This document shows, piece after piece, positions 4,046-34,934 of a DNA stretch of 64,000 nt; the first letter of the stretch is position 1, and the number at the start of each line of letters is the position of its first letter. Under the pieces are notes generated by a model, which ran no database searches, was not told where the DNA came from, and was given only the letters and a program-made list of their open reading frames with translations. Origin of the DNA: Monocercomonoides exilis PA203 (Eukaryota; Protista; Preaxostyla); assembly GCA_001643675.2 (NCBI GenBank), contig LSRY02000023.1, forward strand, positions 186,001 to 250,000, in the 5' to 3' direction. The position numbers and the translations under genes were made by a program.

Positions 4046-7000
4046 TCAAGTGCTTATCTCTTTCTCTTTCTGCTTGATGTTATCTTTATCTATTCTCTTC
4101 ACTGCAATCCTAACCCGCAGCGGCTTTGTTGTTGGATGAGGAGAAGTCCCAGTGACATCCTTTATCTTTTTGAGCGAAGAGAACAAAGGAGACGAAGGAA
4201 GTACTTTCAATTCACATTCTTGTTTCGATTGCTTCATTTGCTTTGACTGCTGTGTTGGGGATGGAGCTGTTGGCAACTGTACTTTCTCATTTTGTAACTG
4301 CTGTTGCAGAACAGGCTTTTCAGGGTTAATTGAAGTTTTCTTTGGAGTGTTTACTTTTGATCGAGGCGAAGCAAGACGCTTGGACTCAGTTTTCATTCTT
4401 TTCTTTCCAGCAATAAGCGTTTTCTGAAATCTCTTGAAAAGTTTATCATCTCTCGTTGCTTTATATTCTTCGTCATCTTCTTCTTCGTCATCTTCATCAT
4501 CGTCATCGTCATCACTAAAATCATCATCTGACTCATCACGCTTTTTCTTTTTCTTTGCTGCAGTTTTCTTCTTCGAAGGCTCTTCATAATCAGACCCTGA
4601 ATCTGAAACAGGTTCAGCATATTCTGATTCCTCATTTAGATCACTTTCGTCCATCAGCGCCAAATCTGGATCAACAAACTCCTCCTCCTCCTCTTCTCTC
4701 TCTTCCTTTGGTACACTTTTTTGTGGTCTTTTGATCTTCAGCTTGATGATTGTTGAGCGCGGTGTTGGTGTTTGTGACTGAGAAGGAGACAAAGAACGAT
4801 CAGAACTTGATCTTTGTTTGGCTGATTGTTTTGAAGAAGACTTAGCTTTTGCTCCTTTTGTTGGCACAGGAGATTCTGTTTGTGAAGGAGACGGAGACAG
4901 AGAAGGTGATGGAGATGGAGAGAGCGAAGATCGTTTAGCTCTTTTTGGCTTCTCTTTCTTTGGTTTTGATTCGATGTACTCTTCGTTTTCATTGGCCTCA
5001 CACATTTTCAAGAACTCTCTATCGCTCATAACATCTGCATAGCGAACAGCCTTTCTTCTTCTAAGTTCGTGTCCCAGGAATGTGTTCTCATCCTGCTCAA
5101 ATGGATTGCCATACGAAGACGACAAAGCAATGCCATCTCGTATGTACTCTTGTGGCTGTTCAGCAGGCAACTGAAGGAGTGGCTGAAGCCAGTCAGGCAC
5201 TTGTGATGTCTTGACATATAGCCGAGATGGAAGCTTAGATGAATTTCCAGAAGAAGACGAGGAAGAAGGCGAAGTGCTTGTAGTCTGCAAAGAACTTCCC
5301 TTTGAAGCGTCTGAAACAGCAGCTGAACTCAACGATGCAGTTGAAGTGGATGGTGTGATTGAAGTTGTGGTTGATGTTGATGACGAAATTGATGATGCTT
5401 TCATTGACGGAGATTGTCCTGCAACAGAATCTGTTTCTGTTTTATTCTGCATCTTTTCTTCCAAGCACTTCTTTTCCCATTCTGCATATCTTTCTTCATC
5501 CATTTTTGCAAACAGCTCCAGTTCTTCATCCGAGCGTGCAATCATCTTATTGATTTCTGCATCTGAAGGAATGTTAAACCTTTGCATTCTTTCTTCCTCG
5601 TCTTCTTCATCGTCATCGTTCTCGTCATTTGAATGTTCCGTTTGCTTTTTCTCAGAATCATTCGAAGCCTTTTGTGCTTCCTCGCTCTTTTCTTTCCGCA
5701 TAGCTGTCTTTTCATACAAAATCTCAAGCATCGCTTTCTTTCTCTCTTCCGCTGTGTCTGTTGTGTTAAATTTCCCTGCCTGAATAACTTGCCGATCAAC
5801 ATCCAGTTTGTACTGAGCTCTTTCATAAATACGCGCCTCAATTGGCGCAATTGACAGGAGCTTAAGCACAACGACTTCTGCCTGCTGCCCAATACGATGT
5901 GCTCTGTCCTGTGCCTGAAGATCCATAAATGGATTCCAGTCTGAATCAAAAAGGATTACAGTGTCTGCTGCTTGCAGGTTGAGACCCTGCCCACCAGCTC
6001 TTGTAGACAGAAGAAAGATGAAGATAGAAGGATCTGAGTTGAACTGGTTGAGGAGGAGTTCTCTATCCTTTGAGTGTCCATCAAGACGGATGTGGGAAAA
6101 TCCACGCATCGAAAAGAACGATTGCAGAATGTCCATCACATGCGTCATCTGAGAGAAAATGAGGCATCTGTGGTTGCTTGCCTTGAACTTCGGGAGAATA
6201 CGATCCAATAGTTCGAATTTTCCAGAAGATCTCCATATGGAGTCATCAACAGGAGCGCCAGTCAGAAATAGATAAGGATGATTGCACACTTTCCTCAGCT
6301 GCATAATAGTGTTCGATAGGCCTCTCTTCGCAACATGCCCTGATGTCGCAGATATCTCCACTGCTCCTTCACGTTGGGTTCTTTCGTACAATCGGCGCTG
6401 TATCAAAGATAAGTCGCATTTCACAACTCTTTCAAGTTTTGGAGGAAGCTCCTTTTCGACTTCTCGTTTTAATCGTCTCAACAGAAACGGTCGCAGCACC
6501 TGATGCAGCCTGTTAACCACCAAAAGACGCTCTTCTTCTGTTACATCCATCTTTTCGCCTGGAGCCGAGTCAAATGGTGCTGAGAACCACTGCTCAAAGG
6601 ACTCAACTGAATTGAAGATAGTCGGAAGCAGAAAGTTTAGCAGAGACCAAAGCTCAGGCAGGTTGTTCTGAAGAGGTGTTCCAGTCAAAATCAGTCTGTG
6701 CTTTGACTTGAAAGAGCCAAGGGATTGAACAAACTTGCAGCGAGAGTTTTTCATTCTGTGACCTTCATCGACAACAATGTAGTTCCACTTGATTCGCATC
6801 AGTCTTGTTCGATCGCTCATGACGTACTCATAAGTTGTGAGGCAGACATCGAATCGTGTGCCCTTCAGCGCTGACTGCCAGGCATACTGCCTGATCTCCT
6901 TTGGCCCCTTATATGTGATCACTCTGATGCATGGCGCCCACTGTTCAAATTCTCTTTCCCAGTTTGAGATTGTTGATAAAGGCGCAATGATAAGAAACGG

Positions 7001-8335
7001 TCCTCTATTTCCCTTTGATTCGATCAAATAGCACAAAAGAGAAATCGTCTGTATTGTCTTGCCCAACCCCATTTCATCAGCAAGAATTCCATTCAGGTTA
7101 TTGTTGTAAAGTGACACAAGCCATTGAAGGCCTTTCATCTGATACTCTTTTAACACACCTCCTCGAAGAATTTTTGGCTGTGTCAGCACAGATTCATTGA
7201 CTGTGTGTGCAATTGTGTAATAAAAATCCCGCGACTCAAGCAGATGCCTTGCTGTTGAACTCAAATTACTAGAAGAAAGCTCCGGCTGTTGTTCTTCCGC
7301 TTCAATTGGGACGTCTTCAAATCCCATTAACTTTTTCTCTCTTTCTTCCATTTCTTCCTGTGATAGCCCTTCAAATGGAATAAATTCCACTTCTTTTCTT
7401 TCTTTCTTTGCTTCCTTTCTTGTTTCATCTTTATGCTCCATAACTCGAACGCAAACTTGATCAAGAAATTTTTCGGTCTCGCTCAAAATATGCATCAATC
7501 TCGAATTCTTGCTTTCTTGAACATATTCAATGTATTTTTCCATATCATTTTCTTTCAATGCTTTTAGCCTATTTTTCTCTTTCTTTTCTTGTTGAGCACT
7601 TCGTAATTGCTCCTGCTTCTGGAAATGAGTTGAAAGAGAAAATATTAATTTGGCCTGCATCTGCTTTTCTTTATCCCTTTGAATAAATATGTCTCGTATT
7701 TCTTTCGTTGCAGAACGTATGTAAGATCCAAATGCAAGTCTATCCACATCTCGCGGAATTGATCTTTGAATAGATTTGGTTGCGGTTGAAATGTTTTCTC
7801 CATACTTTGCGTTGAAGCGCATTGTGGTTCTTTCTATTCGATCAAGGATTGCTGTTTTCAGCAATTTTTGTGTTCCTTTCAACAAATCTTGACTCTGCAA
7901 TTTTTTAGGAAAGCCATTTTGGAACATTTGCTCACTTGAATATATTGACGCTAATGGAACGGAACGCACAAAAGCAGTAAGATCATTTTTCACAATTTTT
8001 GGAGTTGGAAGAGTTCCGTTCATCCATGCATTTTGAGAACCAAATGAATTTGCAATAAGTTCATGTGAAGGTGGAATTTTTGCATTTTGAAGTTGTAACA
8101 AAGTTTGCTCTGCATGCATTTGTTGATTGCATGGTAATTTTCCAGACCCAAACCTTCTGTCGCATTTGAAATTTGCAGCTATTGCAGAACTTGCAATCAT
8201 TTCTAAAGATGATACTGTAGATGCATCAAATCTCTCTTTATGTGCATTAATATACGACAAATCAGAAAAAATGGCTTTCAACACTTCAGGGTCACGGGTC
8301 CAAGGAGGGGCCTGGAAAGAATTTTGATTTTGCAT
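4046..8335 (-). CDS. SNF2: SWI2/SNF2-family chromatin-remodelling ATPase (BRM/BRG1/Sth1 subfamily), intronless
   Basis: Motifs NGILADEMGLGKTIQT, DEGH, TGTPLQNNL, STRAGGQGLNLQ and QAQDRAHRIGQ are present, plus an HSA-like segment (RLKALKENDMEKY) and a post-ATPase IARSDEELELFAKMDEER segment. Confidence 0.95.
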   Translation of the reverse strand: MQNQNSFQAPPWTRDPEVLKAIFSDLSYINAHKERFDASTVSSLEMIASSAIAANFKCDRRFGSGKLPCNQQMHAEQTLLQLQNAKIPPSHELIANSFGSQNAWMNGTLPTPKIVKNDLTAFVRSVPLASIYSSEQMFQNGFPKKLQSQDLLKGTQKLLKTAILDRIERTTMRFNAKYGENISTATKSIQRSIPRDVDRLAFGSYIRSATKEIRDIFIQRDKEKQMQAKLIFSLSTHFQKQEQLRSAQQEKKEKNRLKALKENDMEKYIEYVQESKNSRLMHILSETEKFLDQVCVRVMEHKDETRKEAKKERKEVEFIPFEGLSQEEMEEREKKLMGFEDVPIEAEEQQPELSSSNLSSTARHLLESRDFYYTIAHTVNESVLTQPKILRGGVLKEYQMKGLQWLVSLYNNNLNGILADEMGLGKTIQTISLLCYLIESKGNRGPFLIIAPLSTISNWEREFEQWAPCIRVITYKGPKEIRQYAWQSALKGTRFDVCLTTYEYVMSDRTRLMRIKWNYIVVDEGHRMKNSRCKFVQSLGSFKSKHRLILTGTPLQNNLPELWSLLNFLLPTIFNSVESFEQWFSAPFDSAPGEKMDVTEEERLLVVNRLHQVLRPFLLRRLKREVEKELPPKLERVVKCDLSLIQRRLYERTQREGAVEISATSGHVAKRGLSNTIMQLRKVCNHPYLFLTGAPVDDSIWRSSGKFELLDRILPKFKASNHRCLIFSQMTHVMDILQSFFSMRGFSHIRLDGHSKDRELLLNQFNSDPSIFIFLLSTRAGGQGLNLQAADTVILFDSDWNPFMDLQAQDRAHRIGQQAEVVVLKLLSIAPIEARIYERAQYKLDVDRQVIQAGKFNTTDTAEERKKAMLEILYEKTAMRKEKSEEAQKASNDSEKKQTEHSNDENDDDEEDEEERMQRFNIPSDAEINKMIARSDEELELFAKMDEERYAEWEKKCLEEKMQNKTETDSVAGQSPSMKASSISSSTSTTTSITPSTSTASLSSAAVSDASKGSSLQTTSTSPSSSSSSGNSSKLPSRLYVKTSQVPDWLQPLLQLPAEQPQEYIRDGIALSSSYGNPFEQDENTFLGHELRRRKAVRYADVMSDREFLKMCEANENEEYIESKPKKEKPKRAKRSSLSPSPSPSLSPSPSQTESPVPTKGAKAKSSSKQSAKQRSSSDRSLSPSQSQTPTPRSTIIKLKIKRPQKSVPKEEREEEEEEFVDPDLALMDESDLNEESEYAEPVSDSGSDYEEPSKKKTAAKKKKKRDESDDDFSDDDDDDEDDEEEDDEEYKATRDDKLFKRFQKTLIAGKKRMKTESKRLASPRSKVNTPKKTSINPEKPVLQQQLQNEKVQLPTAPSPTQQSKQMKQSKQECELKVLPSSPLFSSLKKIKDVTGTSPHPTTKPLRVRIAVKRIDKDNIKQKEKEIST

Positions 8336-22191: not shown

Positions 22192-24234
22192 GGGTGATTT
22201 TTTTATCCGGACATAATTTTTATTTTTTGATAAAAAAATAAATATTTTGTTATAAATCGCATGTTGAAATTTTCGAAAAAATGCAACATTCAATAGTAAA
22301 TATAATCCCTCAATTCTCTTTTATTAATTCTTCTGGTATTTCTTCGTTCATTAACATCTTCTAAATCATCATCTTTTAAAATTTGGGATTTGGAAATTTT
22401 TCTTTTTTTCGGCTTCTCTTCAGAAAACAAATCTTTTTCAATTTTTCCATCAGTAGAATCATCAATATTCTTCTCCTCTTTCATCTTTTTGTATGCTTTC
22501 CATTCATCCAAAAATGCTTGGTCGGAAATATTTATTCCATGAAAATTGAAACGATGGGATTTTTTTTTTCAGCTGAACTGAAGGAGTGTCAGGTAACTTC
22601 ACCAATACAGAATTGGACTGCCCAGACAACACGCCGCTCTTTTCAAATGCAGAGTGAATTGTTGAAGGAAGCAATGCAGTTTGCAAAGCCTGTGGCAAGG
22701 CATTTGCAACTGCTTTTCGTCTGAGTGCGATCGAAGAGGAAGATGGAACAACATGGTTTGAATTGAAACATCTTTAAAACACAGCAAAAACACCGCAGTC
22801 AAGTGGTTGTGTTAGATGAGTGCTGTGTGGAATAAATGTCACTACGTCAATTGATGTAACTGCAAATTTTTGCCACAGATCTGGCTGTGCTCTTGAAGGA
22901 TGAGAATCCAAGAGAAGCAAGCATCTATCTTCATTCAGATCCAGCAATTTTCTTCTTTGGGCAATTCCAGGTAGTAGTACCTCTTCAGCGTAGCGCGCAA
23001 ATAATGCATCAATCATCCATCCATCATTGTCTGCCCAGGCGTGAAGCTGCGGGCTGAGCAAGACCTTCATTTCTTGTGGCAGTTTTTTGGATGGCCAAAG
23101 AACAAGGCTTGGTAGAGAATAACCATCAGCGGCAACTGCAACCACAAGTGTGGAGTTCGGCATGTTGATTGGTGTTTTGGAAAACCCGACTGGGGCATCT
23201 GACGGATGAACGGCTAGTTGTTTTGTGGTGTCGGAAAGGCGTGAAGAGGATTCGTCGGTGTTGAAGATGAGTGAAGTGGAGTATTTATGAGTGTCATGAA
23301 GTGATTGCAGAAGGGAGAAAAAAGGTTGAAGAGACTGCTTATTGGATACAGATAAACGTTGAATATCAACGTTATGAGGAATGGACGTTTTGAGATCTGG
23401 ATTTCGTTTGACAAAGGAATTTGGTGTTGATTTTGAAATTTTAACTTCTTGATTTTCTTCTTCTCCGCTTCGAATTTTTCTATCAGTTAGCACTGATTCC
23501 ATCTTTAATTATAATCAACAATAAATATTTATTAGAAAGAAATAATAATGCACACAAATCGTTTTGTTTGAGTTGCAGAATAACTAACTCCTGTCATTCT
23601 TTCGATTCTGATGACTCCGGTTATCATTTCTTTGTCTTCTTTGGTGAAAAGCTCTGGTCGACCAACTTTTCCCACAATTCTACCCTTTTCAACGGCAGTT
23701 ACGGCTCTGTTTATCGATGAACGAGAGAATTCATTTAGATTAGCAGCTTTGGTAACACGGCGTTTTCCATCAGCAATTATTGTGGCTATACGTAGTAATC
23801 GATTTTTGATTTGACGATACTGGAAAGATTTCATCAAATCTCCCAATTTAGCCAATCCACTTTCTTTTCTTTGTTTGACAACACTCATACAAATAAAATA
23901 TTGGTTATGATCTTGTTTTTATTTTTTTAAAAAATTTTTATTTTGAAATGAAAAAAAATCAAAAAATTTTTCGATTAAATTCTAACTTAGTCAGCCCCGT
24001 TGCTATTACCTAATCTCTTCAGGGGAGGCACAAATCAGAGATGGAGGAGCAAACCCCCCCATCTTCCCATCCTTCCATCAGAGATTGGGTGTAGTTATTC
24101 AATCTGAAATTCCAATTGCTGACTTTTCCTTATATATCAAAAATATTATAAAATATCCAAAAAGTGGGAAGAAATAATTCATAATTAAAACCTTTGTCCG
24201 GATAAGAAAAAATGTCCGGATAAAAAAACCACCC
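22192..24234 (-). mobile_element. Tc1/mariner-superfamily pogo/Fot1-like DNA transposon, full length, 23-bp TIRs, TA target duplication
   Basis: Left end TA|GGGTGATTTTTTTATCCGGACAT (22192-22214) and right end ATGTCCGGATAAAAAAACCACCC|TA (24212-24234) differ by 1 mismatch. They enclose a DDE_1-type transposase gene. Confidence 0.92.
22290..23888 (-). pseudogene. pogo/Fot1-like DD35D transposase, intron-containing, inactivated by a nonsense codon and a frameshift
   Basis: Exon 1 (23888-23556) is HTH-like, followed by a 53-nt phase-0 intron at 23555-23503. Exon 2 carries NTDES / LLLDSH / QPLD with 35 residues between D2 and D3. An in-frame TAA at 22774-22776 is followed by continued coding (RCFNSN...AFEKSGV), and there is an apparent frameshift in the A-run near 22560. 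Confidence 0.85.
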
Positions 24235-24583: not shown

Positions 24584-27500
24584 ATGGAGAAGCCATTGGT
24601 GTATCAACCTCCTGCAAAATTAGCAGAATTAATGCAAAAGAATGATGATAAAGGTTCCGTTGAATATCAACGGTTGCAATGGATGCAACTAAGAAAAGGA
24701 ATTAATGGACTTATTAACAAGGTTAGGCAATTATTAAAATTTTACAAATTTTATTCTTTTTAGGTTAATGTCTCAAATCTAAGGGAAATAGTTAAAATGT
24801 TGTTTACGCAAAATCTGGTTCGAGGAAGAGGTTTGAAAAATGATGAAAGTTATTTTGAAGAAATTTTGAAATTGTAAACACTTATTTTTTTAATAAGGCA
24901 TTTTTTCACGGAGCCTTTTAAAAGCACAGGCAGCTGCTCCCAAATTTACAAATGTTTATGCGGCTGTTGTTGCTGCTGTCAATACTAGACTTCCTGCTGT
25001 TGGGCAGCTGGTTCTTATTCGACTTGTTACAAGTTTTAAAAAATCGTTTGAGCGAAATGATAAACCAGTGTGCCTTGCGACAACCAAGTTTATTGCGCAT
25101 CTAGTGAATCAACTTGTTGCTTCTCCGGTTCTTGCATTGGAAATTATCACGTTGCTGATTACAAAGCCAACAGATAGCTCCATCGAGTTAGGAACAAGCT
25201 TTATGAAAGAAATTGGCAGTCTTCTCACCGAAATTGAGCCAAATGCTGTTGCTAAAATTTTTGATAATTTTCGAGAACTGTTGCACGAAGGAGAGATATC
25301 AGATCGAGTTCAGTTTATGATAGAAAGTCTCATGGCCGTTAGGAAAGAAGGATTCAAAGAATATCCTGCTGTTATTCCAGAATTAAATATTGTGAATTCC
25401 GAAGACCAAATAACTCATGATGACATTCTTCTTGATTCTCCAAATTTAGATCCCCATTCAGAATTAGGTTTGTATTATTTTTTTTTCGACTCCAAATAAA
25501 CTTCTCTTTTCTCTGAATTTTTTAAAAATGAATTTATTGCAATCAACCGAATTTTGATATGATGATTATTTATCCTTATCGCTCCATTTCTCGAACAATA
25601 ATACTGTCTCATCAGACGTGTTTCGCTATGAGCAGAATTTTTTGCAGAACAACGCGAAATATGAGCAAATAAAGAGACGTATTCTGGACGGTGCGGAATT
25701 AGAATCTGAAAGTGGGATGAGCGAAGACGATTCAGACAACGAAAGTGATGAAGAAGCTGACGATGAAGAAGAAGAAGGAGCAGGAAGTGAAGGAGGAAGA
25801 AGAATTGGAGGTGCTTCGAAGACAGGGGGACTCAGCGATTCCAAGCTGGCTACAGAAGTTGAAAGCGCAGAAGAAACCGAGCAGAAGAAAGTTGAATTCC
25901 GCAAGCAGCTTTATCTTCGTATTATGTCATCTGTCACTGCAGACGAGTGCACACACAACATCCTCTCACTTGGTGTGGCAGAAGGAATGGAGATGGAGGT
26001 GGTTCTGATGCTAATTGAATGCTGTGCGCAAGAAAGGACATACAACTCTCTTTTCCACACTGTTGCGCAGAAGCTGTGCTTGTTGGATAGAGTGTACCAG
26101 GAAGCGTTGGATGAATGCTTTGCGCTGCAGTATGGCAATGTGGAGACAGGGCAGCAAGGATTGATTGCGCGCGCAGACACAAAGAAGATCCAGAAGATTG
26201 CAATGTTCTTTGGGAACTTGCTTGCGCTGAATGCGCTTCCATGGTCTGTGTTGGAGTATGTGAAGCTGAGCGAGGCAGACACGACGCCTTCCACCAGAAT
26301 TTTCCTAAAGTACATGTTTCAGACAATGCGATCAGAGATGGGACTGGCAAAACTGCGGAAGCGTCTGGACGATGAAACCATGGCGCAGTTTTTCGTTGGC
26401 CTGTTTCCGATGGACAATCCACGCTCTGAGCGCTTTGCCATTCGGTTCTTCGAGTCTATTGGGCTGCGCCCGCTGAGCCACAAACTGGAGCAGCATCTTC
26501 AGGAGGCAGCGCAGCGGCTGATCAGCGGAGAGGGAAAGGGAGAAGGGGAGAGCGATAGCGATAGCAGCAGCAGCGGAAGTGACAGCAGCGATGAGAGCAG
26601 TAGTGGAAGCACAAGCAGCAGCGGGAGTGGGAGTGGGAGTGGAAGTGATAGTGAGAGTGGAAGTGGGAGTGAAAGCTCAAGTGGCAGTTCTTCGGGCAGC
26701 TGGAGCTCAAGCTACAGCTCCAGTGGAAGTACAACAGGAAGCTCGACTGGGAGCTCGACTGGAAGTGAGAGTGAGAGTGAGAGTGAGAGCACTTCAAGTG
26801 GAACAAGCAGTTCTGAGGGGAGAAGCAGACACAGAGGGAAAAAAGGCAGAAGAAGCGTGTCTAAAGGCAGCTCTGCTTCAGAATCGGATCGGGAAGAGAT
26901 GAAAAGAAGGAAAATGAAAGAAAAAATGATGGAACGAAGGAAGATGTTGGAAAAGAAGAAGCAAAGTGAAGAATTGAAAAAGTCTGGAGCAGAAAAAAGC
27001 ACTAAAAGCACTCACAAAAGAAGTCATGGGAAAAGTGAGAGCGAAAGTGAAAGCGGAAGTGGAAGCGACAGCAGGAGTGGAAGTGAAAGCAGAAGCAGAA
27101 GCAGAAGCAGAAGTCGAAGAAACAGGAATAGAAGAAGCAGAAGCGAGAGTGAGAGTGAGAGTGAGAGCGATAGCAGAAGTGAAACAGATAGTGAGTCGAG
27201 TGATGCATACAGACGGAAGAAGAAGAGGATAACTTCAAGAAAAGAGAGTGAGAGAAGGAGCAGAAGCAGAGGAGAAAGCAGTGAAAGCGAAAGAGAGAGT
27301 AAAAAGAGAAGATTAATAAGGAGTGGGAATGATAAGAAGAAAGAGGAAGAAAGAAAATCAATGAAAGAGAAAGAGAAAGAGAAGGAGAAAGAGAAAGAAA
27401 GAGGAAGAGAAGGAGAAAGACAGAAGGAAAGAGATTATGAAAGAGGGAACAAAACGGAAAAGGAAAAGGAAAAGGGCAAAAAAGACGAGGATAACAGAAA

Positions 27501-27942
27501 AGCAAAGGAAACGGAAACAGAAAGTGAAAGCGAAAGAGAAAAAGATAAGGAAAGAGAGGAAATGAAAAAGAGGAGGAATGAAAGAGATAGAGAAGAAGGG
27601 CACAGAAACGAAGAGAAAGAGAAAAGGGCTGAGGGAGAAAGAGAAAGAGAAAAGGAAAAGGAAAAGGAAAGATACAGAGACAGAGAAAGAGAAAGAGAAA
27701 GGGATAGGGATAGAAAGAGAGAAAATGAAAAAGATAAGGAAAAGAAGACTATGGATGATCATGAAACAAGAAACGAGAAAGAGAAAGAAAAGGGAAGAGA
27801 CAGAGAAAGAGACAGAGACAGAGATAGAAATAGAGATAGAGAAAGAGAAAGAGAAAGAGGAGATGCAAAAGAAAAATCGAGAAGCGAAGGGAAAAGCAGT
27901 CACAGTTCATACGAAAGAGAGCATAGAGATCGAAAGATTTGA
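24584..27942 (+). CDS. CWC22: Pre-mRNA splicing factor CWC22 (MIF4G + MA3 domains) with Ser/Gly and RS/RE/RD-rich tail; multi-exon
   Basis: Motifs VYQPPAKL, EYQRLQW..LRKGINGLINKVN, KFIAHLVNQ, RVQFMIESL, CCAQERTY and FAIRFFESIGL. Short introns, e.g. 24722-24763. Confidence 0.93.
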
Positions 27943-28682
27943 TTTTAAGGAAAGAAAAACATGATCTTTTAAGATTTTCTATTGCATAAAAATTTCTGAA
28001 AGGCAAAAGTTTCAATGAAGCAGGCAGATTTTAAAGTGATTTTCTTCCGGAAACAGAAAGTATTTAAGAATATAATGACAATAAAAATAATTAGTTGTTG
28101 TTAGTAAGTGTTTAAGTAATTTTTGAAATAACAAAAACTTGTTGCATTTGAACTGCTTTTCTGTAACGATTTTTTACAAAGCTTTATTTTTGAAACTCAT
28201 TTCACTGCACATTTCATTCAATTTCTTTTTTATTTTAAAAATAAAAAAAATTTTTTTGCAATCTTCTTGCCAATATCATGATTTATTTTTTTCATAATGC
28301 TCAGTGAGAAATTACAAAATGTGAAGCTTTTTCAACGTGAATGTTATTATTAATGAAATTGAAACTTTGTCATAATTGATTATGAATGTTTCTGAATCAC
28401 GTTCAACTTTTTCATAAGTTCTTTTGAACAACCTACTGAAAGGAGAAAAAATGCAATTAAGGAAAATACTTAATCAAAACTTCTTTCTTCGTCTCACTTT
28501 TGAGAAGTTATTTTATTATTCTTAATTTTATTTATTTATTTATTTTATATTGTTTTCAAAAAGCAGGGAAAAAAATTATTCGGAAACAGCTATTTCTGAA
28601 AACGACAAATCATAAAAAAATAATCTATGGGTTAGAAAAAATATTTTTCCATTGAATCTGGGAAAGTAATTTTTGATATTTG

Positions 28683-29814
28683 ATGAAAGAAAATGAATTA
28701 GAACGGCAATTTATTGTAGAAGGTGCCAATGCAGTTTTGGAGAATAATTTCTCAAATGTGGAAGAAGAAAGCAAAACACAAAATAATTATCCAAATTCTG
28801 TTTCAACTGAAAGGCCCAAAAAACGAAGAAAAAGGCGTCGCCATTTCGATTCAGAAGGCGATGTGGAAATTCATGCAGGAACATTAGCGTCAATCATTGT
28901 GCCAGTCAGTGTGGAAATTCTTACTAATTAATTTCTCAATTTCATATTCACTTCTAAAGGCATTACATTAATTGGAGTAATATTTGTAATTTTATCAATT
29001 GGAACAAATGGTGAATCATATATTTCATTATTTATAACACCAAGTTCTTCTCCGTGTGATTTCGGATAAAATTTATTAATTCCTTATATTTTATTTTCAC
29101 GGAACTCATTTGTTTTAGTCCCGATGGTTATTGTATACCTTTTGGACCAAAAGCAACTGGAAAGCCACCTCCCCCCGAAGATGAAGAAAAGAATAAAAAA
29201 ATAATTATCATTTCAATTATTGTTGCTGCAGTATTTGTTGTCATGATGGTTGCAGTGACATTTTTCATCCTTTGTTGCTACATGAAAGGTTTTACGAAAT
29301 TTATATATGGATGGTTAGTAATTGCAACCGTCATTCTGTTGGGACTTTTTGGTGGTACTATTATGTAGTATGTTTCAGTTTTTTGATATCATGAATGTAT
29401 ACCATTGATTTAATTATGTTTCATAAAACTTCATTAAAAATTCTATGCTGACATAAAATTAAAACTTCATTTTCTTCTTAGCAATCTTGTTATTCGATAT
29501 TCAATTCCTATTGATTGGTTCACATTCTTCTTCTTCTGCCTAAACTTTTCAGTTGCAGGGGTTATTTCTGTGTACATAACATCTCCTCTCTCAATCCAGC
29601 AAGGAATTCTTGTGTTCATTTCCATCTTTATGGCTTGGGCATTGACAAATCTTCCTGAATGGACAACTTGGATCTTGCTTGTCTTGGTGGCTGGTTTGCT
29701 CTTGGAGATGGGAATTTTGTGGTGCTTGAAGAAGATTTTTAATAGAAATCTATTGTTGATTAAAGAGTTTTTTCTTTCAACTTTTCCAAAAAAATTTTTT
29801 TTCAAGCAACATAC

Positions 29815-29849
<35 letters not shown>

Positions 29850-31012
29850 TATCGTATCAATATGATGGCAATACAACAGTGTATGATCTATTTGCTGTGC
29901 TGTGTCCGTGCTGTGCGCTGAACAAGCTGATTGAAATAGCAGACGAGAGAAACGAGCCAATACCTGGCCTGATCTACACAGCAGAGATGGGAGAAGAAAG
30001 GAAAGAGCGCATCAGAGGCGAAGGGAAAACAGAGAAGAAGAAGAAGAAGAAAGAAGAAAAAGGGAAAGAGCAGAAGAATAATAAAAATGATCAAAAAGAA
30101 ATTGAACCCGGGCAGGAAGAAACGCAACCGCTTCTGTCTTCGATTGGGATGAGGGACATTGGCAATGAAAATGAAGGGGTAGAAGAAAGAGGGAAAGGGA
30201 AAGAGAGAGAGAGTATTGTTACTGAAAATGCAAAAGAAAAAAACAAAGCAGTTGAAGCAAAGAAAGAGACAAGACGCGAAAAGAAAAATGACAAAATGAA
30301 AAGAACAGAACAAGAAGACATAATGAAGGAAAAGACGAGTAAGTCTGGGGCATTTCAGAGAGAAGAGAAGCAGAAGGAAAGTGAACGTAATAGCAACAAC
30401 GAAGCAAAGCTTTCCGAAAAGACTCAAAGAGGATCTTCAGAGAAGAGAGAAGGAGATGACGAAGATGCAACTTATATGGGTTTGTGGAAATACAAAATAA
30501 ATTTTTTTGGATAATTTTTGAAAATATTTTTCTTATTAATATTTTGGAATTATTTGGTTTTTAATCGCCGCTCACATTTATATTTAACTGTCTTCACCTG
30601 ATTATTTGTATTTATCAATAATGCTTCCTTTATCAGATGGAACATTGAGCCTTGGGCTTGGCGACTTCATATTCTACTCACTTCTCGTTTCCAGAGCTGT
30701 TCTCACCGACTGGAACACAACATTTGCGTGCTATTTTTCTATTCTATTTGTGTGCTAAAGCTGCTTTTCGTGTTATTTGCAAATAATAATATTTCGTTTT
30801 TTGATATCTCCATACTTTTTTTTTTTCAATATTTTTTATCAAATTTTCCTTTTTAGGGATTATCAATGACTGTTGTGCTTCTGGCTTTGTGGAGAAACGC
30901 TCTTCCTGCTCTTCCCATATCGATTTTCACTGGCACAGCAATCTACTTCGTTTCTCGCTTTCTTATTCATCCTTTTTCTTGTAATCAAGTATACTTAGGG
31001 TTGACTCTCTGA
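28683..31012 (+). CDS. PSEN: Presenilin (gamma-secretase catalytic GxGD aspartyl protease); multi-exon
   Basis: IIVPV, LPEWTTW..L, catalytic [10 protein letters not shown], a large hydrophilic loop, [10 protein letters not shown] and LPALPIS (PAL motif). Stop TGA at 31010-31012. Confidence 0.93.
29815..29849 (+). repeat. (TAT)n microsatellite inside presenilin intron 29694-29879
   Basis: About 11 perfect TAT units are directly visible. Confidence 0.9.
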
Positions 31013-31316
31013 ACATTTCATCAAATTTTTCTGTTCTTTTTGAGAAAATTTAGCTATTTTGTATTATTGTATGTGTTACATATAATTATGAGTTTGAAAT
31101 TTTGCATTTCTTTTAGTTTTATGTTTTGTTTTTCTATTTTTAAGGATATTTTTGTTGAACTTATAAATTTTTATCAAACAAAAACTTGCAAAAAGAGAAA
31201 ATCAAATATTATTGTTTTGAAAAACATTAGCAATCAATTTTCGTTTCGAGGGAAATTTTTTCAAAATTCATTTTCAGTATTATCAACAGTTTAACCCATT
31301 AAATCTCAACTTGAAA

Positions 31317-31632
31317 ATGTCGAAAAGAATCTTTATTGAAGCTTGTGCTTCAGTTTGGGAAATAATATTTTCACTTTTTTTATAAACTTCACTTTGTTAT
31401 TATTCGTTTTATCCCATTTAAGTGACAATCAGCGAGCCATATATTCCGTGCTGAAGCCGAAATAAAAAACAATTTACCAGAATTAGAAATTGTTCAAAAG
31501 CCTGGGCTAGCAAGATCTGGTGCTTTTGAGATCACAACTGAAGACGGGAAAGTCGTTTTCAGCAAGCTCGAAGCTGGGCGCTATCCCAGAGCAGGCGAAC
31601 TTGCGGAAAAACTCCAATCTTTGAAGGATTAA
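31317..31632 (+). CDS. Rdx-family (SelW/SelT/SelH-like) selenoprotein, 81 aa, CxxU motif
   Basis: Exon 1 (31317-31352) encodes MSKRIFIEACAS, followed by intron 31353-31422 (GTTTG..AAG). Exon 2 begins with TGA (31423-31425) and continues QSASHIFRAEAEIKNNLPELEIVQKPGLARSGAFEITTEDGKVVFSKLEAGRYPRAGELAEKLQSLKD*. The Rdx signature G.FEI...G..vFSKL..G.[FY]P is present and a SECIS lies downstream. Confidence 0.9.
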
Positions 31633-31682
31633 AGTTGGAGCAAATGTAACAATACATTTGCAATTTATGCCAATTTCCCCTG

Positions 31683-31755
31683 AAAAGAGATTTTTCATGA
31701 CTCGATTTGCGTAAAGCGTAAGGCCCGCAATTTGACGAATTTTTGAGTCTTTTTT
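31683..31755 (+). promoter_or_regulatory. Eukaryotic SECIS element (type II-like) in the selenoprotein 3' UTR
   Basis: Helix I pairs AAAAGAGAUU with AGUCUUUUUU. The core is AUGA (31697-31700) with GA (31737-31738). Helix II pairs UCGAUUUGCG with CGCAAUUUGA. There is an unpaired AAA (31713-31715) and a GC/GC apical mini-stem. Confidence 0.88.
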
Positions 31756-31862
31756 TGGCATTTTGGCATTTGTGCAAATTCATCATCGTCTTAATTTTTA
31801 ATCGTGCCTAATACTATTTTTTCTTTGTTAATAAAATAATATGTAATTTTTTTTGTTGCTTG

Positions 31863-33939
31863 TTATAGTTCATTTTTGTGAAGTTGTATTCGTTTTTCTT
31901 TCATAATCTTTTCAAACCAAGGTGGCATATGAGAAACTGCCCTAAAGCAAAAGAAACATAAGTCTCCTTTTTTATCATCGTGTAAACCTTCTTTTGGAAC
32001 TTTTGATTGTATTTCTTCAGGACTGAAAAACCATGATGTTGAGGTAATTTTCTGATTTGGACTAAGAAAGAATATGGAGAGGAAATATATAAAAAATGTT
32101 GTAAAAGGAAAGAAATTCTAATAATATTTAAAAAGATACCTCCCGCAAATGGAGCAACGAGAATTCTTCTCCGATGTTTGCTGAGTTTCCACAGTTATTT
32201 TTTTCTCAATTGAAAGGAGGATATCTGATGTTTGGCCGAAGCCTTCTTTCCTAAGATCATTAAACAGATCACTTATTGATGAAGAAAACAATTCTTGCTT
32301 TGTGGGAGGTTGGGTAGAAGGAGCAAAAGTTGTTGTAGAAGCAGAGGAAGTTGATGATAAAGAAGATGAAGGCACAGTGCTTGAAGAAGCAGAAGCTGAA
32401 TCTGACGCTGCAACAGATGCAGACGTTGATGATGCAGCTGTAGAACCACTCTTCTCTTCGAAGACTTGAGAATATTTCAACAGATTAGGATGCTGCGCGA
32501 ACAGCAGCTTATCGTCTTCCTCTTGAAATGGATCTCTCTCTGAATGCTCACAAGCACTGTCTTTTTGGCAGTTCACATCCGATTTTGCATCTTTTCGCTC
32601 ATCCTCTGCAAAATCCATTGTTCCAAACAAAAACTCTTCCGATGCTTCTGATTGAACACAGCCACTTTCTTCATGAGGCTTCTCCTCACAGGAGTTTTGA
32701 CTCAGCTGAGCTTCATCATTTTTCTGCTTGGAATTTGCCATTTCGTTCTTCTTCATCTTCTTCTTTTTCTTTGATAACTCCTCAATCGGAACAAATGATC
32801 TCTGATGAAGATAAAAGCAAAGCTCATGTGTTTGAATTCTTTCAAATGGAAACAGAAACTTGACAGGAAAAGATTGCTTCTTTTCTTCAGATGAAGTTTT
32901 CGAAGTAGAATACACAGCCGAAGAAGCAGAAGAAGCAGTAGAAGCAGAAGAAGGAATTGAATCAGAGCACGATTGAGAAATGGCTGTTGAAGAGCTCTTC
33001 TCTTTGCTATCCTTTCTTTTCACCCGCTTTGTCATTTCCTGATGCTCTTCATCTGCATCTGAGCCAAGTGCTCCTATCGGCTGGCCGAGGCACACTCTTT
33101 GGATCATCTCGAAAGTGTGAGCATTCTCATCCTGTGGATGGATTACAAACGGGATCCTGAAGTTGCAAATATAAACAGTCAAAAAAAAAAAAAAGTGCTT
33201 TAATGCAAAGGATTAAATAAACGGAATTCACACTGTTTTTTGAAGGCAAATTCTTCAATCATTGTTTTTACTACCAAAGAGTAAATAGAACTACGTTGAA
33301 CCATTGATTTGATGCTTGACACAAATTCGTTTTCATAGTCATTCTCTATCTCAGATCCGTCACTATCTACAGAATTTGAATCCGAGAAAAACTGCTGCAA
33401 TGTTATTGTATGAATTGGAATTTCGCAATTCTTGTTAAGTTCTTCCAAAAATAACTCTGATGAACGAAGATCAATTGGATTGTTTAGATGATCAAATGGT
33501 AGTGTTGTTATATTTAAAATTTCAGGAGTAAACGATATCCTTTTTTGATAAAGAGTTGATTTTGCTTCCACACACAAATGAACAAGAGCTCTGATTTTTC
33601 AAAAAAGCACAAAAAGAGGATTATAAAAATCTACCTGCTTGGATTTTTGAAAAAATTAAAAAAATGTACCTTGATGATATTGAATTATCAAAAATTACTA
33701 AAGCTCTATTTGTTCGAGCAAATTTTCTTGAAAGAGATGTATTCGTTCGGAACAAATGTCTAATTCGATTAAAAAAACATTCCCTAATTCCAAAAAACAA
33801 TGAGTTTTAATTTTTAGCGCTTGAAAATTTTTTATGCATACCGGCAGGCATTATCTCTCTCTCTTATATGAATAACAGCTGGCTTTGAATGGCACAAATA
33901 GCAAAGTTCACCACTATTTGGAATATAATCTGGATTCAT
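31863..33939 (-). CDS. CTU2: Cytoplasmic tRNA 2-thiolation protein 2 (CTU2/Ncs2)-like; multi-exon
   Basis: Spliced N-terminus CYLC...CRECFFNRIRHLFR and a degenerate PP-loop LVIFDNSISS. Further motifs RVCLGQ, FPFERIQTHELCFY, SISDLFNDL...FGQT, CSICG and C-terminal LCFFC follow the CTU2 motif order. Confidence 0.7.
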
Positions 33940-34231
33940 GCAATAATGCTGAAGTGCAAGAAAATTAAAAACTTTTTATTTTTATGACAAAATTACAAAA
34001 AAATGAGTGAGATAATTATAAATGTGGGACAATTTCAATTATGAATTTGTTTTGAAATGAGTGGTTATTGTTTTATTTTTATAAATTGAAACACAAAAAA
34101 TTAATGATAATAATCACAACGTTCAACCCATTTGAAGTAAAATTGATAAAAACAAATTAAATTATCAATCTTTTTTTAGAAATTAAAATCTTTCATCTGT
34201 GGAAATTATCAATAAAGCTTGTCCTTTGCGT

Positions 34232-34820
34232 TCACACCAAAATGCGATCATCTTTTTTCTTTCCAACTTCGTATTGTCTTGCTCTCCAGTTACTTTTTCT
34301 CAGACGAACAGGCCTGCTTCCTACATATTTTCCGTTCATTTCCCGAAAGGCTCGCAAATAATCTTCAGAATCTTTAAAACTGAAAATATATAAACATAAA
34401 ACAATCTGTTCAAAGCTTTGAAAGAATTATCCAAACCTCAAAAAACCGTATCCCTTGCTCTTCTTTGTTCGAAAATCACGAATAACTTTTGCTTTTTGAA
34501 ATGATGGATATATGCTAAAGGCTTGAGATAAAGTCTCTTCTGTAACCTCAGGTCCAAGATCCCCACACCACATTCGATAATCATCTATTTTTTAAAAATA
34601 AAAATATTTCATAAATAATATTGCATAATATCATTAACAGCAAACCATCGTCCCATTCAAGCATTGATTTGTCTTCCCAAACTTTTCCACCGGCATATCT
34701 TAATGTTTTCTTTTTAACAGCCTTTTGTTCTTCTAAAACATTTTGTTCACTTGAAACAGTAGATGTTGCACCACGCTCATCCTTTGGTAAATATTTTGAA
34801 GATTGTTTATATGATGACAT
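34232..34820 (-). CDS. RBM42: RRM protein RBM42 (tri-snRNP associated); 3 exons
   Basis: RYAGGKVWEDKSMLEWD, YRMWCGDLGPEVTEE, KSKGYGF (RNP1) and EMNGKYVGSRPVRLRKSNW are characteristic RBM42 segments. Confidence 0.9.
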
Positions 34821-34934
34821 ATTGAGAAAAACAATACCAGTTACGGTAATGCTTAAAGACTGTTCCGAAAAATGATAAAAATTTTTATGGGTGCATAATT
34901 TTCAAATTATGAGCAAAAAAGATCGATTTACGAA

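Follow-up and report, generated by a model that had tools for sequence, protein, structure and literature searches.

The window analyzed here is a stretch of 64 kb of contig LSRY02000023.1 from the nanopore assembly GCA_001643675.2 (101 contigs) of the oxymonad Monocercomonoides exilis PA203 (PMC8767320). It contains on the forward strand a short two-exon gene, termed the SelW gene below, which starts with an ATG at position 31317 and ends with a TAA at 31630-32, comprising 81 codons in total. Its features are listed in Table 1.

Directly upstream of the SelW gene lies a presenilin gene (28680-31012) with a long charged loop and an RNA-verified intron (30750-30856), whose terminal TGA is located 305 nt before the SelW ATG. 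On the other side, an expressed, serine-rich multi-exon gene is encoded convergently on the minus strand (31863-33800). It has no Pfam match, and its RNA-verified intron (32062-32139) is flanked by two C-x-x-C pairs, which suggests a zinc-binding motif. Further genes in the window include a CWC22-like gene with an MA3 domain (25200-27942), a paralogue of which on contig LSRY02000024.1 (83% identical) is split by the annotation into three models (830, 660, and 126 aa); a single-exon gene for an SNF2-family helicase of 1429 aa (4046-8335, minus strand), which is annotated at NCBI and adjoins a BCAS2 gene; and, judged from the ORF translations, an RRM-like RNA-binding gene with short introns (34190-34830, minus strand). 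A DDE_1 transposase-like frame is located at 22774-23888 on the minus strand, with the match in 22774-23502, and a second frame just upstream may represent its N-terminal part. No tRNA genes were found in the window.

Table 1. Features of the M. exilis SelW gene (positions refer to the 64-kb window).
Feature	Position	Strand	Description
5′ UTR (short)	31310..31316	+	RNA contigs begin at 31310-31312, the apparent start
Exon 1, coding part	31317..31352	+	12 codons encoding the first beta strand and the C-A-S part of the CxxU
Intron	31353..31422	+	70 nt, GT..AG, phase 0, 23% G+C, directly before the putative Sec codon
In-frame TGA	31423..31425	+	first codon of exon 2; putative selenocysteine, residue 13
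Exon 2, coding part	31423..31632	+	ends with TAA at 31630-32
Rdx / SelT-SelW-SelH domain match	31453..31617	+	in exon 2; PF10262, TIGR02174, folds 2fa8, 2npb, 2ljk
SECIS, type-2-like	31682..31756	+	pattern search and folds; covered by RNA contigs
SECIS helix I	31682-93 with 31745-56	+	12 bp
SECIS AUGA	31697-700	+	starts 65 nt after the stop codon
SECIS helix II	31702-11 with 31726-35	+	9 of 10 pairs, one U.U
SECIS AAA	31713-15	+	12 nt after AUGA
SECIS 3′ GA	31737-38	+	opposite AUGA
Poly(A) signals, AATAAA and AAATAA overlapping	31830..31839	+	first ones beyond the stop codon; 3′ of the SECIS

Splicing and reading frame

A sequence-only reading of this DNA had proposed that a CxxU motif is assembled across a splice junction, and the coordinates given there were all exact. 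Three RNA samples had contigs with the joint 31352^31423, which brings C-A-S directly in front of TGA, and the DNA run lacked it; neither another acceptor nor any other splice joint at the SelW gene occurred in the contigs of these samples. Since the joint was seen in RNA and the RNA contigs showed no letter differences from the window at this gene, the TGA cannot be put down to an assembly error and is retained in the spliced RNA. The SelW transcript was found in four RNA runs, all from one study, whose contigs are unstranded and drop rare forms. The ATG at 31317 is the only one within 31250-31360 and precedes the Cys codon by nine codons. Past the TGA, exon 2 runs on for 68 codons without a stop and keeps its resemblance to the family.

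Among all donor/acceptor pairs tested, only 31352^31423 put a C-x-x-TGA into the reading frame of the domain. A few other pairs left the frame open but lost the motif, the longest being 31345/31432 with 75 codons and no C/U. The earlier statement that only the UGA form makes sense was thus slightly too strict with respect to open frames, whereas at the level of RNA it was the UGA form alone that appeared. It could still be argued that the working mRNA is spliced from donor 31345 to acceptor 31432 and encodes a 75-aa Rdx-fold protein without Cys/Sec, with the UGA form as a by-product, because this frame is open in silico and rare forms are dropped from the contigs. However, the three RNA samples showed exclusively the joint 31352^31423, the alternative splice would delete the CxxU motif together with part of helix 1, and the homologous locus L002 described below has its intron at the same place. 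We consider this explanation extremely unlikely.

Protein family, fold and annotation

All family searches and the fold model were performed with exon 2 alone; exon 1, with its 12 aa, is too short for a search and was compared solely by setting it beside the homologues. The Rdx/thioredoxin-like fold signature noted earlier was borne out by exon 2 alone, which scored 28.7 bits with the Pfam model Rdx (PF10262, curated cut-off 22.6) and 40.8 with the SelT/SelW/SelH model TIGR02174 (curated cut-off 34.2). Among solved structures, MIEN1/Rdx12 (2ljk) was the best sequence match (E 3e-4), and an Atlas search returned Rdx clusters only. The predicted structure of exon 2 (pLDDT 86) had its top fold match in the bacterial SelW-related protein 2fa8 (Z 8.5, rmsd 1.7, 65 aligned), followed by mouse SelW 2npb (Z 6.4), MIEN1/Rdx12 (Z 6.0), and then thioredoxins. 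Foldseek also placed the SelW/Rdx family first, yet with E > 0.1. The core motifs GAFEI and FSKL are retained, and the putative CxxU follows the first beta strand, as expected for the family.

SelT contains a signal peptide and a helical insertion, and SelH and SelV an N-terminal extension. The M. exilis product is a short single domain of 81 aa without leader, because the sole ATG at the start of the transcript is that at 31317 and no ATG lies upstream of it on the transcript. Judged from its sequence, the protein has the build of SelW and not that of SelT, SelH, or SelV. A 70-column tree without vertebrate references did not assign the protein to SelW1 or to SelW2/Rdx12; it placed the protein outside both bacterial groups, a position which gives no sign of gene transfer.

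Where the Rdx family has Tyr/Phe before Cys and Gly-Tyr after Sec, the active site of the M. exilis protein shows Ala and Gln-Ser, respectively. In a set of relatives drawn mostly from one marine bacterial-type group, Tyr or Phe preceded Cys in 112/112 sequences, and Tyr stood two positions after Sec in 111/112. The homologous loci that were fetched share the flanks of these relatives, the SelT-like L010 excepted. The unusual flanks may alter the targets or the redox potential of the protein, or may be due to drift in a fast-evolving lineage.

The supposition that standard annotation had missed this gene was supported indirectly: no protein containing exon 2 was found in two very large collections, although other proteins of M. 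exilis, both NCBI and EukProt entries, are among the sequences searched. The word index, which covers 37-119 aa, returned nothing for exon 2 alone, and relatives were found by profile and full HMMER searches; long multi-hit proteins that topped the profile search were set aside as repeat noise. The SelW gene thus is apparently missing from public protein sets, which is explained by an exon 2 without methionine and an exon 1 that ends at a TGA.

The 3′ UTR and homologous loci

The hairpin downstream of the TAA had been described as a SECIS element on the basis of its AUGA, GA, helix II, and AAA, and all of these were recovered in a pattern search and in folds. In its core, UGAC (31698-701) stands opposite CGAA (31736-39), forming an internal loop between the two helices, and the apical ministem has 2 bp. 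With at least nine helix-II pairs required, the SECIS pattern matched this site and no other across both strands of the 64 kb, and of 20,000 UTR sequences shuffled with dinucleotides preserved, 0.035% contained it; the pattern was derived from the textbook consensus and written after the element had been seen. The folding energy is ordinary (z -1.2), and the G+C content of the element is 47%, compared to 24-33% in the flanks. Helix I, the internal loop, the AUGA/GA quartet, the 10-bp helix II, the AAA left unpaired 12 nt past the core, and the apical ministem are features shared with eukaryotic type 2 SECIS elements. The shortness of the ministem places the element between type 1 and type 2, and no SECIS model of Rfam scored it at E values up to 10.

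RNA contigs carrying the joint 31352^31423 extend to 31756-31836, and in each run one contig contained both the joint and the hairpin. The motifs of the poly(A) signals follow the definition given for M. exilis (PMC8767320). An mRNA reaching 31830 carries the SECIS element. If a further AATAAA/AAATAA within exon 2 (31460-31466) served as an early poly(A) site, the transcript would end before the SECIS; no sign of such use was seen. The stop codon of the convergent gene (31865-31863) lies about 25 nt past the SelW poly(A) signal, and this gene has no exact AATAAA/AAATAA on its own strand until 31332. The 3′ UTRs of the two genes therefore probably overlap, possibly across the SECIS. In one run, the RNA contigs of SelW and its neighbour abut at 31836. 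As the contigs are unstranded, part of the RNA coverage of the SECIS could come from the convergent gene.

A TGA three codons after Cys was found in seven homologous loci from unrelated samples (L002, L003, L010, L011, L015, L016, L019), in which the preceding strand lines up with exon 1; four others (L004, L009, L012, L013) had no usable motif. In all seven, the TGA falls in the same column as in M. exilis, in accordance with the Cys/Sec alignment on which the sequence-only reading depended. The most similar arrangement was seen in L002 (573-1010), from Logan SRR13490892, a eukaryote, which represents a SelW gene lacking annotation. Its short first exon ends with C-x-x and is followed by a GTTTG donor, and the acceptor AG is directly followed by TGA. 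It shares 36% identity with the M. exilis gene over exon 2 and 60% over the core, and differs from it by an aromatic residue before Cys and a Tyr two after Sec. The other six loci have no intron before the TGA, indicating that the intron position is common to some members only.

SECIS-shaped elements with unrelated letters are located behind the genes at L002, L003, L015, and L019. That of L002 is of type 2, at position 966 and 69 nt after the stop codon; three of the four lie 52-69 nt after the stop, compared to 65 nt in M. exilis. A MAFFT alignment of the elements did not bring the structures into register.

Database homologues often show W at the TGA column or start past the TGA, and wherever this was checked the W corresponded to TGA. 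For example, L002 is represented in the database by P0011, a wrong gene call in which the intron was read through and TGA taken as W. A large group of Rdx proteins of 73-75 aa from short metagenome contigs (P0019, P0026-P0139) is likewise called C-x-x-W; these are probably bacterial-type selenoproteins with UGA mistranslated as Trp.

These observations bear on the question whether a near-cognate tRNA might, independently of the hairpin, read the UGA as Cys or Trp, so that the product would be of the CxxC or CxxW type. Cys forms do occur in the family, namely in Rdx12 (PMC3316567) and Giardia (PMC2874811). A canonical SECIS at the usual place, the presence of SBP2 and eEFSec (PMC10703272), the pairing of TGA with SECIS-shaped elements in the homologues, and the mis-called TGA behind the W residues that were checked all argue against such read-through, which we regard as barely plausible.

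Decoding, function, and comparison with known systems

We consider it very probable that the two-exon gene of M. exilis encodes an 81-aa CxxU selenoprotein of the SelW/Rdx type, with Sec incorporated by ordinary SECIS/SBP2 recoding. Removal of the 70-nt intron places the TGA in frame as codon 13 behind C-A-S, and the mRNA in all likelihood reaches as far as the poly(A) signal at 31830, so that it carries the SECIS. Following the eukaryotic mechanism and the published machinery, SBP2 would bind the tandem G.A core and recruit eEFSec with Sec-tRNA; UGA would then be read as Sec and translation would stop at UAA, whereas without selenium it would end after 12 residues.

Of the components expected for this process, supplementary file 5 of PMC10703272 gives SPS, SepSecS, eEFSec, and two SBP2 genes for M. 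exilis, and it lists no such machinery for Blattamonas. Contrary to what had been implied, UGA recoding in M. exilis is no novelty: enzymes of Sec-tRNA synthesis and the elongation factor were published in 2019 (PMC6759080). A SelW or a SECIS described for an oxymonad was not found in the papers searched, with a listing in table S1 of PMC6759080 being possible. Apparently new are the SelW gene of M. exilis and its SECIS; known are the Sec machinery of this organism and the SelW of Spironucleus.

The gene might instead be a decaying selenoprotein gene, still spliced but with the UGA mostly acting as a stop, so that a 12-residue peptide is formed and a second copy elsewhere does the work. This would fit the divergent flanks around the CxxU motif and the TGA of the upstream presenilin gene, apparently a normal stop. 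It is difficult to reconcile with an intact frame, retained core motifs, an intact SECIS of raised G+C content, a transcript in four RNA runs, and the published machinery, and we judge it very unlikely.

As a SelW selenoprotein, the product would adopt the Rdx fold, in which Cys10-x-x-Sec13 opens helix 1, and is probably cytosolic, because it has no N-terminal extension. Provided that Sec is incorporated, it likely acts as a small thiol/selenol redox switch, reducing cysteines of partner proteins or transiently bonding to them; mammalian SELENOW binds 14-3-3 through Sec (PMC13437758). The switch could be recharged by the thioredoxin system and form part of the oxygen defence of this anaerobe. 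This last role is the simplest guess and the weakest step of the proposal. It is based on the thioredoxin and peroxiredoxins of M. exilis and on cysteine, which is thought to be its small thiol, and it is weakened by the two SelW genes of Spironucleus, which were not induced by oxygen (PMC6397501).

A further idea concerns the intron before the Sec codon, which might be kept for control in the SelW lineage represented by M. exilis and L002, marking a high-priority selenoprotein with its own targets. The last exon opens with the UGA, which therefore has no exon junction behind it. If the idea were correct, selenium scarcity would not expose the mRNA to junction-dependent decay, in contrast to that of mammalian SELENOW, which undergoes nonsense-mediated decay at low selenium (PMC13437758), and the changed active-site flanks would go along with own targets in a mitochondrion-free cell. 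We consider this unlikely.

In the SelW gene, the selenium machinery already published for M. exilis, the first eukaryote known to lack mitochondria, gains a concrete client with its SECIS, which may also serve as a seed for a genome-wide search for the oxymonad selenoproteome. The gene is a clear case of an expressed gene apparently lost from annotation, its second exon opening with TGA and containing no methionine. General knowledge of selenoproteins is unchanged by it, and specialists will not be surprised.

With the vertebrate SELENOW/Rdx family, the M. exilis protein shares the thioredoxin-like fold, the N-terminal CxxU, GAFEI, and FSKL (PMC13437758), as well as a length of about 80-90 aa and a SECIS in the 3′ UTR. 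Vertebrate SelW genes have six exons (PMC3316567), whereas that of M. exilis has two, with the intron directly before the UGA and the Sec codon in the last exon. SelW2/Rdx12 (MIEN1, 2ljk) differs by Cys in place of Sec (PMC3316567) and by an N-terminus longer than that of the M. exilis protein. The SelW genes of Spironucleus salmonicida and S. barkhanus resemble the M. exilis gene in having an in-frame UGA and in belonging to anaerobic metamonads with Sec machinery (PMC2874811, PMC6397501). In S. barkhanus, the sole earlier search for such an element in a metamonad, no canonical SECIS was detected (PMC2874811); by comparison with the published description, M. exilis SelW possesses one, and SBP2 in addition, which points to the ordinary eukaryotic SECIS/SBP2 route of presumed Sec insertion in a metamonad.
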